Shown here in pieces: positions 31,377 to 41,217 of a DNA stretch of 64,000 nt. Location of the stretch: contig JAWQFM010000032.1 of assembly GCA_033442325.1 (NCBI GenBank), forward strand, positions 571,956 to 635,955. Reading direction: 5' to 3'. Below the pieces are notes generated by a model that ran no database searches, had not been told where the DNA came from, and saw only the letters and a program-made list of their open reading frames with translations. The position numbers were made by a program, and so were the translations under genes. Position 1 is the stretch's first letter. Each line of letters starts with the position of its first letter. The DNA is from Salpingoeca rosetta. Its lineage: Eukaryota; Protista; Choanoflagellata.

Positions 31377-34300
31377 ATGCGGCAGCAGAGGCAACGCCGC
31401 ACAGTTGGGGAAGCACGCTCCACATGCGTGAGCGTCGTCCTCTTGGCTGTGCTGATCGGCGCCTTCTGCCCCCTCATCGCCTTGGGCTCGACAGCTGCTG
31501 CTAGTGGTGGTGGTGGTGCTGCTGCTGGTGGTGCTGCTGCCACCGTGGCTGCTGCGGCCACGACTACTACCACCGCAGATACCGCACTCAGTGATGACGA
31601 TGCCGACATGAGCATGTCCCCGTGGGGCAACTTGGACATGCACTCGTTTGCCTGCTGGTTTCCGACCCCCGACCACGCCGCCATTGTGGCATCCGACAGC
31701 GCGCGCGATGCACTGGTGACTGCCGTCCTGGATGCTGCCGCCGTCCCCGCTTCTTCCGTTTCGCAGCAGGTCATCGCCAGCTACGTTGGCGAGATGGAGG
31801 CCGTTGGGGTCAAGGTTGAGCTCAGCATCACCAACACCTCGACCCTCCAACACCTCTTTGACGTGGCAGAGGACCCGGGCATTGCCATCCACCTGCCCCT
31901 TGCCGCTGACAGCGACACGCTTGTGATTGCGCGCCCCTTGATTGCCAAGTCTGGCGGGGACTGCGGTGCCCGTGGGGACTGCTCATCCACGCCAGCACCG
32001 CCGTCCAAGAGAGTGCATGATGTCAGCACAGCACAGCTCGTCGTCATCGTTGTCGGCTGCGTCGTCGGCGGCGTTGCGTTTGTCGTTGCTGTCATTCTCC
32101 TCGGCGGCACCTTCAACACCGGCAGCCGTGGAAGTGGTGGCGGTGGTGGTGGTTTTGATCGAGGTGGTGGTGATGACGCTGGCGGTGGTCGAGGGTGGGA
32201 GGATGAACGACGCAACAACAGCAGCGGCAACAACAGCAGCAGGGGCGGCAACAACAGGGGCAGTCACATCAAGCACCACAACAGCAACACCACCAATGCC
32301 ACCGCTTACACCACAAGCAGCAGCAGCAGCAGTGCCATGCATGAGACGTCCCTTCCCTTGCCATCCATCGTGCCGCCACCGCCACCACCAGCTGTGCGCC
32401 TGCGCGGGGTGGACGAGATGGTTGTGGGTGGACACCTACATCCCTCCTTCTCCCACGGCTCAGTCGCATACACACCATCGCCGCCACGCCAACACCACCA
32501 ACACCATCAGCGACAACATCAACAACAACAGCGACAACCGCTGCTGCGCGGGGGCGGCGTTGACGCTGTGGAGGTGCTGGCCTCAGATGCCGTGCAGCGT
32601 CGTCTCAACCAGCCCCGCACACACGCCACCGCCCTACCCAGCACCAGCGACACACACCATCCACACTACCACCCCTACCATCCACAATACCAGCAGCAAC
32701 AGCACGACGTGAGCCACGGCCACTCGTCAAACGACAACAGCAGCGGCAGTTCACCCCGGTCTTCGTCACTGCACAGCGACCGGCTCACCACCACCACCAC
32801 ACTAACCACATCAACCTCCATTGGCCACCACGACAGCTTTGTTGCAGCCAACGATGATGATGGTGGTGGTGGTGGTGACGGCAGCATCTCGCTGATGCAT
32901 GACGCCGCTCACCGTGCATTTGAGGATGAACCGCTGCCTTCTGACCTGCATCTGCACCTGCACCCCGAACACCTCCACCCGCACCACCGACCACACACGC
33001 AAATGTACCCGGTGCACGCGGGGGAAACGGTGGAGGACATGCTTGAGCCGGCACACATGAGCACCATCACGATTCCTCTCGATTCTGCAGCCACGACGTC
33101 CACAGACATGTTTGCAGACATGTTCAACGTGCAGTCGCCAAACTTCAGCGACGAGCTGGCCCTGCACGGCAGCGGCGACGCAGCCGCCCTCTCGCCCGTC
33201 ACCGTCAACGACCTTCGACGACAACAACAACAACAACAACAACAACAACAACAACAACAACAACAACAACAACAACAACAACAAGGGCTGCGCGTGTGCA
33301 GTGTGGGTCGTGTACACGGCGCTGCCATGGGTATGCAGCCACACGCGCAACAACAACAACAACAACAGCAGCAGGGGCAACGGAGGCTGCTTGTGCCACC
33401 TCCTTGGTTGGTTGAAGGGATGCAGCAGACCAGCGCCCACAATGATCAGCAGGTGACAACGAGCAGTAGCAGTGGCAACAACGGTCGACCACGCCATGCT
33501 GCCTCATCACAGGCCAGTGGTGCTGCTGGACAGAATATTGCCCCGCATGCACTCGACCGCTCACTCTTCTCCATCCCAGCGCCCCATCACCACAACAAGC
33601 AGCAGCAGCATTCAACCGCACTGCCACCGCTCTCGCTGCCGTGCACAACCAAGAGCGGCAACGCGAACCGCAACGGGAACGCACCATCCAGCCAACACGG
33701 AGCAAGTGCGTTGCAGTGTGTCTGTGCAGTCGTGTGTGTGTGTGTGTGTGTGTGTGTGTGTGTGTGTGTGTGTGTGTGTGTGTGTGTGTGTGTGTGTGTG
33801 TGTGTGTGTGTGTGTGTGTGTGTGCTAGTGTGTGCTAGTGTGTGCTGTGTGTACATTCTCTGTCCCATGTAGATTATTGTTGCTGACGACCATGTGTCCA
33901 CCATTTCCACCCCTCGTGGTGCAGAATCACAGCGGTCACCCGTGCAGGCGGGTACTGCAGACAAGCTTCCAAACAAGGTGCGCACGTCACAACCGCGCTC
34001 TGTGTTTAGGCGCACATGAACACACATACGCTTGCACATGAACACATACACTTGCACATGAGCAGTCGCATTTGCTCGCACTGACACCCCGTTCACTGGC
34101 ACTGTGTCCATGCATTTCAGGGTGCAACATCTGTGAAGAAACCAACAAAGGCGGCGACAAAGAGGGTGAGCAATGTGTGCAAATGTGTGAGTACGTGCAA
34201 GTGCTTGTGTGAGTGTGTGTATCTGTGTGAGCTTGAACGCGCGTGTGCTTCGAAGCAAGAATTGTTTCTCCTTCTCAACAAACTCTCACGCATGTGATTG

Positions 34301-34896
34301 ACGTTGTGGTTGCTTGCAGTCACGACGGCAGGCTGGCCAGGACAAACCCAAGACGCCACGCGTGCGTGATCGCCGCGATTACATGAAGGCATACAGACGC
34401 CAGCGTCGGCAGCAAGTGCGTATGTGTGTGTGTGTGTGTGTGTGTGTGTGTGTGTGTGTGTGTGTGTGTGTGTGTGTGATATCATCAAGTGCGCACAGCC
34501 ATTGGTGGTTGTGGTGGTGGTCATCATAATTTGCAATTTGCACAGGACGACTCACACAACTTATCATCACGCGACACCACTCTCCCCTTTTGCACCATCC
34601 CCCTCCTCCGCAACTGCACACACACACACACACACACACACACACACACACACACACACACACACACACACACACACACACACACACACACACACACACA
34701 CACACACACACCACAGGTGGAGGAGCTGCAGGGCCGGGTTGCGCAACAGGAGCACGAGAAGCGCAAGCTGAAATCGCGCGTGGACGAATTGGAGGATTTG
34801 GTGGACAGGTTCAGACACGCGTTGCCACCAGACATGTTTGCCGCCATTGTACAGCAGGGTAGAGGCGGAGGCGGTGGCGGTGTCGTGCAGTGCTGA
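31377..34896 (+). CDS. Predicted type-I membrane protein (about 900 aa): signal peptide, ~180-aa ectodomain, single TM helix, low-complexity cytoplasmic tail, C-terminal atypical bZIP. Exons 31377-33705, 33925-33977, 34121-34165, 34320-34415, 34717-34896
   Basis: Hydrophobic N-terminus [46 protein letters not shown] (about 32037-32108). All four GT-AG introns are phase-compatible (1,0,0,0), giving 2703 nt. C-terminus [19 protein letters not shown]|[32 protein letters not shown]. Confidence 0.75.
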
Positions 34897-39158: not shown

Positions 39159-41217
39159 ATGGAACCTCCAGGGCCTTCCACTCTCTCAACTTCCACCCAC
39201 ACACGGTCACCACCTGCGATTTCCGTGTTTGAGTGGGCCACGATCGCGCAGCACCTGTTGGAAACACAAAGCCAACCCGCAAGCCCAGGCGAGGAGCTCG
39301 ACGACATGCCAAACCGCCGCCACCGCCACAGCAATGCGCGGGCCCTGTTCAACCTGATGCTCACCTGCCGCAACCTGTACAATGAGCTGCCATGGGCAAT
39401 GCCCAAGTGGCACCTGGCCAACCTCGGCCTGCTCGTGGGGTGTTCGGAGCACTGGTTGAAAGAGAGCTTCCCTGCTCAAGGACGGGCAGAAGCGAACCTT
39501 GCACTTGCAACAGACGCTCCATCGGCCAGCCACGGCAGCGAGCGACCACAAGACCAACACCAACAACGCATGCAAGCTCACAGCGACACTGACCACCAGG
39601 TTCAAGTGTGGCTTGAGCGCCGCTTCCTCGCGTATTCGTGGCTCGGCATGACATGGAGCAGCACGTGTCCGTACCTGCAGTCACGCATCATGCTTTCCCC
39701 AGAGGCCTTCTGGGCTGACTTTTCACGTTACGGCCGGGTCGCATTCAAGAGCCTCGCAGCCATGCACGACTGGGCACCTCCACGGGACCTGGAGGAAGAG
39801 CAGCGACAGCTGCCACGACGTCAGGAAGGCCACGGACACCCTCAGCAGCAGAGAGCGGGCGATGACAATGGTGATGGTGATGGTGGTGATGATGGTGATG
39901 GTAGTGGTGATAATGATGGCGATGACAATCGTGTGGACGGGGGGCGCACGCACGACTTGACACGGAGCTGGCCGGCTGCGTTTACCTTGGAAGCGACCAT
40001 CCACTCCTCAGCAGATGCAACAAGGCTGGCAGAGCTTCGGGGCGCGTTCAGCAACGTCTCATGCCTGCGCATGATCTTGCAGGTGCGATCGCCTGGCCTT
40101 CGGCTCAGGATCCACCAAGCAGACACAGTTCACGTCAACCTTATCATTATCAGCGGTCGAGACTCCACAGTGTTTGAGGAATTATCAGACATCTCCCACA
40201 TCATCATCAATCGCGCGACGCCGCTTCATATCCAAAGAATGCGCAACGTGCGCATGTGCACAGTGAGGCGCTCGTTCATCAGAGACTTCAGCCAGCTTTC
40301 TAGTCTGCAACACCTCGCCCTTCGCAAATGCCCGTTCACACTCTCTGATCTCGCAGCGTTGGCTGTTCCACCACGGCTAGAGTTCAGTGGGTGCACCTCT
40401 GGTGTTAGTGTACTGACACAGCAGCACTGGCCAACAACAGCGTTCAGCAATGCATCCATTGAGCAAGTGCAGCACGTGCTGGCCACTGGACTGGTGGGTT
40501 ACTGTGTGTGTGTGTGTGTGTGTGTGTGTGTGTGTGTCAAAGTGTGTGTGTGTGTGTGTGTGTGTGTTTGTGTTGGCGTCTGTGCATGAGATCATGAGTG
40601 GGAACTTGTGAGAAGAGAGTGGCACGGGGTGCCCTTGGCTTACCGGGTCTGCGTCCTCACCTCCTTCGTATGGCTGCTTGTGCCAGTCGCCCACGCTCGA
40701 CGCAATATGGCAAATGGAAGAAAGGCGTCAGCGGCGTCGAGAGTACATGCGGAGGTACCGGCAACGAGCGTATGAGGAGGTGAGTGCACTAAGACACATG
40801 ATGACACTTGGTTGTTTCAATTGACACTTGATTGGTTGACTGTTGTTTGATGGCGCACGCTCTTGCGATGTTTTGCATGTTGCATCCACTTTGTCTTTCA
40901 ACCCCAGTGCTTGGATCACTGGTGAAACCGCTCCACTTCTCCTTGCAAACCCATTCGCACATTCCACGCTTCCAATACACACACACACACACACACACAC
41001 ACTCGCACACACCAAAACGCACACACACACACACACCAAAACATGCATCTCCTCCTGTTTACCATCGTGACTGTAGCGTCGCTGGCTGCAGGCGCACAAT
41101 CAACGGCTTCGCCAAGAGCTGGAGCAGCAACAGCAAGAGCTTCAACAGATGCGCTTGCTCCGGCAACAGTTGGAGTTGGAAGCATCGGCAAGCTCACACA
41201 ACTTGTCCGACACGTAA
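39159..41217 (+). CDS. F-box-like and degenerate LRR protein with C-terminal atypical bZIP (about 522 aa). Exons 39159-40493, 40687-40779, 41077-41217
   Basis: Split F-box-like motif ISVFEWATIAQHL...ALFNLMLTCRNLY. LRR-like FSQLSSLQHLALRKCPFTLSDLAAL. Phase-0 GT-AG junctions give ...LATGL|SPTLDAIWQMEERRQRRREYMRRYRQRAYEE|RRWLQAHNQRLRQELEQQQQELQQMRLLRQQLEL...DT*. Confidence 0.62.

Follow-up and report, generated by a model that had tools for sequence, protein, structure and literature searches.

A bZIP-like tail probably shared by two neighboring genes of Salpingoeca rosetta

Introduction

Membrane-bound bZIP factors such as ATF6 and CREB3 are type II proteins whose N-terminal cytoplasmic bZIP lies just before the transmembrane helix (PMC13294678), and in a survey of 896 bZIPs the residues Asn13 and Arg21 were found to be the most conserved and near-invariant, with three kinds of exception (PMC4736632). 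Here we analyze a stretch of 64,000 nucleotides (nt) from the choanoflagellate Salpingoeca rosetta (contig JAWQFM010000032.1, C32 below, positions 571956-635955), referred to as the window, in which two genes about 6 kb apart, A and B, end in tails that carry the same motif and resemble a bZIP, while a third gene, C, lies between them. Protein matches bear PTSG_ names, and the assembly comprises 55.4 Mb in 68 contigs.

Like ATF6 and CREB3/OASIS, A pairs a transmembrane anchor with a basic-zipper segment on what would be the cytoplasmic side, which suggests control by release from the membrane; however, its basic-zipper is C-terminal (amino acids (aa) 810-880), some 580 aa past the helix (aa 221-244), and cleavage at S1P/S2P is putative. 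A is predicted to share with Notch-type receptors a topology in which one transmembrane helix links an ectodomain to a long cytoplasmic tail with a possible role in the nucleus, but it has no sequence or domain similarity to these receptors and the likeness goes no further than this predicted topology.

Genes A and B have been annotated publicly before, as hypothetical proteins: NCBI record GL832986.1 lists a 522-aa product with exactly the span of gene B and a 952-aa product whose end coincides with the stop codon of gene A. We hold, with somewhat more belief than doubt, that A, B and C are three separate lineage-specific S. rosetta genes rather than a demonstrated module: the A family would end in a bZIP-like tail, B would have captured the cassette that encodes this tail locally, and C would lie between the two by chance.

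Results

The tails of A and B both carry the motif R-R-[D/E]-Y-M-[K/R]-x-Y-R. In each, a phase-0 intron lies precisely six residues beyond the last Arg, and the exon behind it encodes a heptad coiled coil. In A, which is read on the plus strand, the motif (R-R-D-Y-M-K-A-Y-R, 34371-34397) belongs to the basic segment encoded by exon 4 (34320-34415; 96 nt, 32 codons, symmetric phase 0-0), and exon 5 (34717-34896) continues with the coiled coil at about 34717-34824, a short tail and the stop codon; the residues at the d positions are L, Q, L, L and F, and those at the a positions V, K, V, V and L. In B, also on the plus strand, the motif (R-R-E-Y-M-R-R-Y-R, 40735-40761) is encoded by exon 2 (40687-40779; 93 nt, 31 codons, symmetric phase 0-0), and exon 3 (41077-41217) encodes the coiled coil at about 41077-41181 and then stops, with L, L, Q, M and L at d and N, L, L, R and A at a. 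The motif exon is symmetric 0-0 in all cases, and in A2, a paralogue of A on another contig (C17), it measures 93 nt as in B. The initial annotation had reported two genes about 6 kb apart with a common C-terminal motif and a phase-0 intron placed six residues past the conserved Arg, and both observations hold: the spliced frames are open, the two peptides that it quoted are present as written, and the intron stands at the same place in both genes.

A degenerate DNA pattern for the motif matched twice in the window, against zero matches expected from shuffles, and five times in the whole genome (55 Mb), against zero for a reversed control. One of these five is spurious, lying in a broken frame, and the true carriers are four genes, namely A, A' (a second copy of A on the same contig), A2 and B; the motif is thus not widespread. 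A relaxed motif, Y-M-x-x-Y-R, was also tried and rejected as noise (14 matches against 12 in the control), its additional matches being non-coding or in broken frames.

Two views of this tail compete. It may be related to bZIPs, or it may be a generic Arg-rich segment (a nuclear localization signal, or an RNA- or lipid-binding stretch) joined to an ordinary coiled coil that oligomerizes the cytoplasmic tail, in which case its role in B would be oligomerization only. The geometry argues for the former. As in the canonical bZIPs CREB, GCN4, ATF4 and Fos, a basic segment of A leads into leucine-type heptads, and an Arg precedes the first Leu by nine residues. The domain closes the protein behind a Q-rich region, a position that many bZIP factors share, and its g-e' charge pairs are of the kind usual in dimeric zippers. 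The Pfam model bZIP_1 (PF00170) aligns A in the canonical register, with the motif at positions 13-21 and the first Leu at position 31. The Arg-x9-Leu spacing is exact in all four genes, and this spacing together with at least four leucine-type heptads is found in the same register in A, A2 and B. Moreover, bZIP_1 is the best Pfam match of A (25.7 bits, E 1.3e-5, below the gathering threshold of 27.6), exon 5 of A alone matches its positions 28-60 (E 0.0029), and the solved-structure sequences nearest to the A tail are those of bZIPs, namely GCN4, CREB, FosB and ATF4 (E 0.02-0.8, none significant).

The contact residues point the other way. Where canonical bZIPs read N-x2-AA-x2-[S/C]-R, the signature reads R-x2-YM-x2-Y-R in all four genes, that is, the positions N, A, A, S/C and R are occupied by R, Y, M, Y and R in A, A', A2 and B; Arg21 alone is kept, and the four replaced residues include Asn13, one of the two most conserved across the surveyed bZIPs (PMC4736632). 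The d positions differ too, including Gln, Met and Phe, and no relatives were found outside S. rosetta. A2 reaches only 18.7 bits with bZIP_1, amid generic coiled-coil families, B has no bZIP_1 match at E up to 10, and a six-frame scan of the genome with the same model returned 13 canonical bZIPs above the cut-off, with neither A nor B among them. The solved-structure sequence nearest to the B tail is C/EBP beta, at a non-significant E of about 3. A comparison of introns is uninformative here, as canonical S. rosetta bZIP genes have the domain mostly in one exon and the zipper-only matches are ordinary coiled coils. A precedent for a working bZIP with the signature Asn replaced, by Cys, is given by oomycete bZIPs as they are cited in PMC4736632; however, those proteins keep the remaining signature and pass family models, whereas the genes described here depart from it at four of the five contact positions.

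Because the geometry fits and the contact signature does not, we call the tail bZIP-like; bZIP membership and DNA binding are unproven. The identification of both tails as atypical bZIPs, made in the initial annotation, therefore fails on the replaced signature residues, on the sub-threshold scores of A and A2 and on the missing match of B, and the view that the tail has nothing to do with bZIPs deserves serious weight, even if we consider it the lesser of the two possibilities.

Whether the tails of A and B are homologous is a separate question. We consider a common origin, as a movable two-exon cassette, to be likely, because the motif is rare, the introns of both genes agree in phase and offset, the symmetric exons match, the genes are 6 kb apart, and the tails align with p = 0.0024 when the register is fixed by the intron. 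The alternative is that they are not homologous: both are coiled-coil tails rich in Arg, Gln and Glu, and the nine-residue match and the intron position would be due to chance or convergence. It can draw on the small number of identical residues in the anchored register (11 of 56), on the nucleotide identity between the exons (about 30-34%) and on a hidden Markov model of the A and A2 tails, which scores B at -0.9 bits when shuffled B tails reach 8.8; without the anchor, the best ungapped segment between the two tails has p = 0.025. Coincidence must account, however, for a motif whose control is zero in 55 Mb and whose real instances are confined to these four genes, for an intron of equal phase and offset, for motif exons that are both symmetric and nearly the same size, for the distance of 6 kb and for the anchored p value, and we regard it as unlikely. 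The exon-shuffled homologous module of the initial annotation is thus probable as to its common origin, while the profile similarity between the two tails is not significant.

On the reading of common origin, B would have gained the symmetric 0-0 exon together with the terminal exon, most likely via local duplication or rearrangement from an A-type neighbor, and such a local capture would explain the spacing of 6 kb. The direction of transfer was probably from an A-type gene to B, since the A family, with three members on two contigs, is the older one.

The structure of gene B (exons 39159-40493, 40687-40779 and 41077-41217, plus strand, 522 aa) is consistent with such a gain. Exon 1 (39159-40493, 445 aa) places B, as a short representative, in a large family of S. 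rosetta proteins, for which a genome search gave 98 matches across many contigs, mostly in uninterrupted frames of 600-1200 aa, and whose full-length members look like LRR solenoids. As the relatives are longer and the two annotated members examined have no basic-zipper tail, B appears as a shortened family member with a foreign tail.

The splicing of B was assessed with RNA-derived contigs and reads placed on 35301-41300, that is, over B and C. The joint 40779/41077, with GT..AG ends, is directly visible in cDNA-like contigs from runs X4 and X8, which belong to different studies. These contigs cover 39918-40492 and then 41075-41300 with 92 letters between, and the depth in the bins 40501-40700 and 40701-40900 is that expected if exon 2 alone is covered. 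Since the 92 letters and the depth bins fit exon 2 and the second joint is direct, both junctions proposed for B in the initial annotation, 40493/40687 and 40779/41077, are supported by contigs of two studies, in agreement with the 522-aa NCBI model. Stranded raw-read runs assign B to the plus and C to the minus strand.

The label F-box/LRR, under which B had first been described, stands in part. In B and its paralogues P0001 and P0002, Pfam gave no F-box (PF00646 or PF12937) with E as high as 10, and no LRR match either. Language-model features place B and its paralogues near F-box/LRR clusters (0.87-0.93), and the Atlas model of P0001 aligns to LRR proteins with a template-modeling score of 0.44-0.53. 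An AlphaFold2 (AF2) model of B has beta-strand repeats at aa 264-370, with a predicted local distance difference test score (pLDDT) of only about 60, and the AF2 model of exon 1 built without an alignment, at pLDDT 43, is too low for a fold search. An LRR-like fold of the family is therefore plausible from the modeled paralogue, and compared with FBXL (F-box/LRR) proteins B is without a Pfam F-box and is a neighbor in feature space only.

Gene A (exons 31377-33705, 33925-33977, 34121-34165, 34320-34415 and 34717-34896, plus strand) is an open frame of 900 aa in which all introns are GT..AG. The NCBI model adds an upstream exon (30948-31018) and an intron (31019-31291, GT..AG) that extend the frame by 52 aa, which accounts for its 952 aa (52 + 900); the region 30948-31376 contains a long (CAA)n tract coding poly-Q/N. 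A first hydrophobic segment (aa 18-37, 31428-31487, Kyte-Doolittle peak 2.77) follows an Arg-rich stretch and could be a signal peptide or a signal anchor; with the NCBI extension it would be a signal anchor and not a cleaved signal peptide. Some 650 aa lie downstream of the transmembrane helix (aa 221-244, 32037-32108, Kyte-Doolittle peak 3.09). If the Arg-rich N-terminus is inside, this long tail would be cytoplasmic whether the first segment is a signal peptide or an anchor.

The paralogue A2 is built like A throughout: its N-terminus is Arg-rich and precedes a hydrophobic segment, and the ectodomain is followed by a transmembrane helix and a low-complexity tail; its small exons and the position of the intron are also those of A. 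Exons 3, 4 and 5 of A and their splice sites are kept in A2, and the introns have diverged. In the ectodomain (aa 72-252 of A) the two proteins are 54% identical. Just before the transmembrane helix, aa 195-202 of A (31959-31982) read C-G-A-R-G-D-C-S, and A2 has C-E-T-R-G-D-C-S there, a conserved Cys-flanked R-G-D. Pfam and Atlas searches with the A ectodomain gave nothing above noise, and a search for homologues of A exon 1 among proteins returned none, its candidates being swamped by low-complexity words. Six cDNA-like runs have an identical word share of 0.32 over 33560-34900, near the exon-only fraction, compared with 0.55-0.80 for runs that look genomic. Taken together, A, A' and A2 would be three membrane proteins in which a transmembrane helix separates an ectodomain of some 180 aa from a cytoplasmic tail of roughly 650 aa. 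This tail is rich in S, Q, G and H and would close with a basic segment that leads into four to five heptads of coiled coil.

The copy that holds A' belongs to an inverted segmental duplication. The stretch 30763-39455 of the window recurs at C32:440586-449990, about 150 kb away on the same contig, with 84-94% nt identity. The duplicate carries A' (95% aa identity to A), a copy of C (C') and the first 99 codons of B only, after which the frame stops. A contig of run X8 departs from the window at the breakpoint 39455 and continues as the truncated B' copy (C32:440582-440896). As B' sequence occurs in this run, which also holds spliced B contigs, B' may be transcribed.

Gene C is read on the minus strand as two exons (38058-37664 and 37486-35722) that encode 719 aa, and its sequence is that of an annotated 'TPR repeat containing protein' (P0003). 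The gene models place it between A and B, head-to-head with B at a distance of 1.1 kb, just as the initial annotation had it. That annotation also described C as a TIR/HET-like-TPR-PH protein, a label of which the TPR part is clear, with TPR_12, a repeat of the kinesin-light-chain type, above threshold in seven stretches (286 bits). The C-terminal PH domain (PF00169) is borderline, at 23.1 bits and E 1.1e-4 against a cut-off of 25.1 bits, and several paralogues carry PF00169 among their precomputed hits. At the N-terminus, no Pfam TIR, TIR_2 or HET match was obtained for aa 1-330 at E up to 10, and aa 1-275 have no Pfam match.

A model of this N-terminal domain (aa 1-275; pLDDT 89.9 with a 30-sequence alignment) gave plant TIR domains as the top rows in Foldseek, with E of 0.03-0.1. 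With VIA-align, Z values of 6-7 were obtained to TIR, ThsB, SARM1 and nucleoside deoxyribosyltransferases, a range where arrangement alone may be common. The predicted fold thus matches that of the TIR domains of plant NLRs, SARM1 and ThsB, and equally the nucleoside 2-deoxyribosyltransferase fold; but in contrast to those TIR proteins C has neither a Pfam TIR/HET match nor an NTPase module, and its fold scores are middling. A TIR-like fold is a reasonable assignment from the model, but not a secure one. The stretch W-C-L-W-E in C resembles the W-C-L-x-E-L helix of plant TIR domains, which bears the catalytic Glu, and its own Glu is by sequence a candidate for that role.

A search with the same domain found at least 40 S. 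rosetta paralogues, as well as relatives in Monosiga and other protists. The RNA reads show the intron junction 37486/37664 as a loose end at 37487. Over 37100-38060, most RNA reads placed on C are only 95-99% alike, with fixed differences, and diverge at 37754 and 38043; as they probably come from C' or other paralogues, the expression of C itself is not established by those runs. Being one of at least 40 TIR-like/TPR/PH paralogues, C would lie between A and B most likely by chance.

The initial annotation had joined the three genes into one surface-to-nucleus circuit, and the pairing of the two zippers bears on this proposal. A heptad table gives the A homodimer three attractive g-e' pairs (R-E, E-K and R-E), and gives the A-B pair R-R, R-R and E-E clashes, with Val facing Asn at the first a position of the core. 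Under the established bZIP pairing rules, such repulsive pairs and the Val-Asn core mismatch disfavor a heterodimer, and the A homodimer would thus be favored over an A-B heterodimer. A complex prediction with the zipper exons only (A exon 5 and B exon 3) scored 0.02 against a mark of 0.34 and is evidence neither way. That a released A tail heterodimerizes with B, which would act as co-factor or SCF-type degrader, while C senses microbes in the same pathway, is highly improbable: although the shared cassette and close spacing, the head-to-head arrangement of C and B, the TIR-like fold of C and the LRR-like character and F-box-like feature matches of the B family could be cited in its favor, B has no F-box by Pfam, the heptads favor A homodimers over A-B pairs, the duplicate locus keeps A' and C' and no functional B, and adjacency is cheap given the sizes of the C (at least 40) and B (about 98 matches) families.

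The proposed circuit is thus without support, and the adjacency is better explained by the mode of cassette copying than by a joint function. The proximity of A and B needs no joint function because local capture of the cassette accounts for their spacing, and a member of the C or B family beside any given gene is unremarkable because both families are so large.

The locus is flanked, according to the NCBI annotation, by two genes on the minus strand: a C2 / myotubularin-related / FYVE protein upstream of A (25722-30688) and an NDK7-like nucleoside diphosphate kinase (PH_NDK7_N + NDK) downstream of B (41511-44943). Long (GT)n or (CA)n microsatellites occur in nearly all introns within 33700-41700, and in every intron that flanks the shared cassette. 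Elsewhere in the window, a dip in GC content at 10-12 kb (down to 0.31) was rejected as a genomic feature, as it coincides with a run of N that represents an assembly gap (10449 to about 11280); the same run gives rise to the long 'open reading frames' seen in several frames there.

Discussion

What the tail of A might do can be proposed from its predicted features. It would homodimerize in parallel, favored by its g-e' charge pairs, and its basic segment would act in nuclear targeting or nucleic-acid binding; A could then be a putative membrane-tethered regulator released by proteolysis. That the tail is indeed cleaved off and binds DNA is a tentative idea, to which we give rather less than an even chance. 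A more ambitious version, in which the A family would be choanoflagellate-specific receptor transcription factors of Notch-like topology that release a divergent bZIP (R..YM..YR) proteolytically, with B as a soluble LRR modulator or competitor, seems to us doubtful indeed.

Several points weigh against our view of three separate genes, of which one family bears a bZIP-like tail and one gene captured it locally. The A/A2 profile does not detect B above composition-matched shuffles, and the homology between the A and B tails therefore rests on nine residues and gene structure. A phmmer comparison of the 79-aa tail of A with 1.84 billion representative proteins, at E up to 0.001, found no tail homologue beyond this genome, where A, A' and A2 themselves are absent from the output too, the blank showing only that no other library protein reaches that level. 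The splicing of A is supported indirectly, via the conservation of exons in A2 and the exon-only word share. Dimerization, cleavage, nuclear entry and nucleic-acid binding of the A tail are predictions only, and shared regulation may still be the reason that A, B and C lie close together.

The present value of these observations is modest, the genes being already annotated as hypothetical proteins and the circuit being without support. B nevertheless offers, if its tail was gained as we suppose, a clean small example of domain gain via a symmetric-exon cassette beside its likely donor. The arrangement of A, if it is functional at all, would be new relative to the known membrane-bound bZIPs. 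Should A contain a working DNA-binding zipper, S. rosetta would possess membrane-tethered bZIP-like factors with a topology opposite to that of ATF6/CREB3 and a recognition helix unlike those of catalogued bZIPs, an idea that is testable because S. rosetta is genetically tractable, and that would bear on the origin of surface-to-nucleus signaling in the closest relatives of animals.

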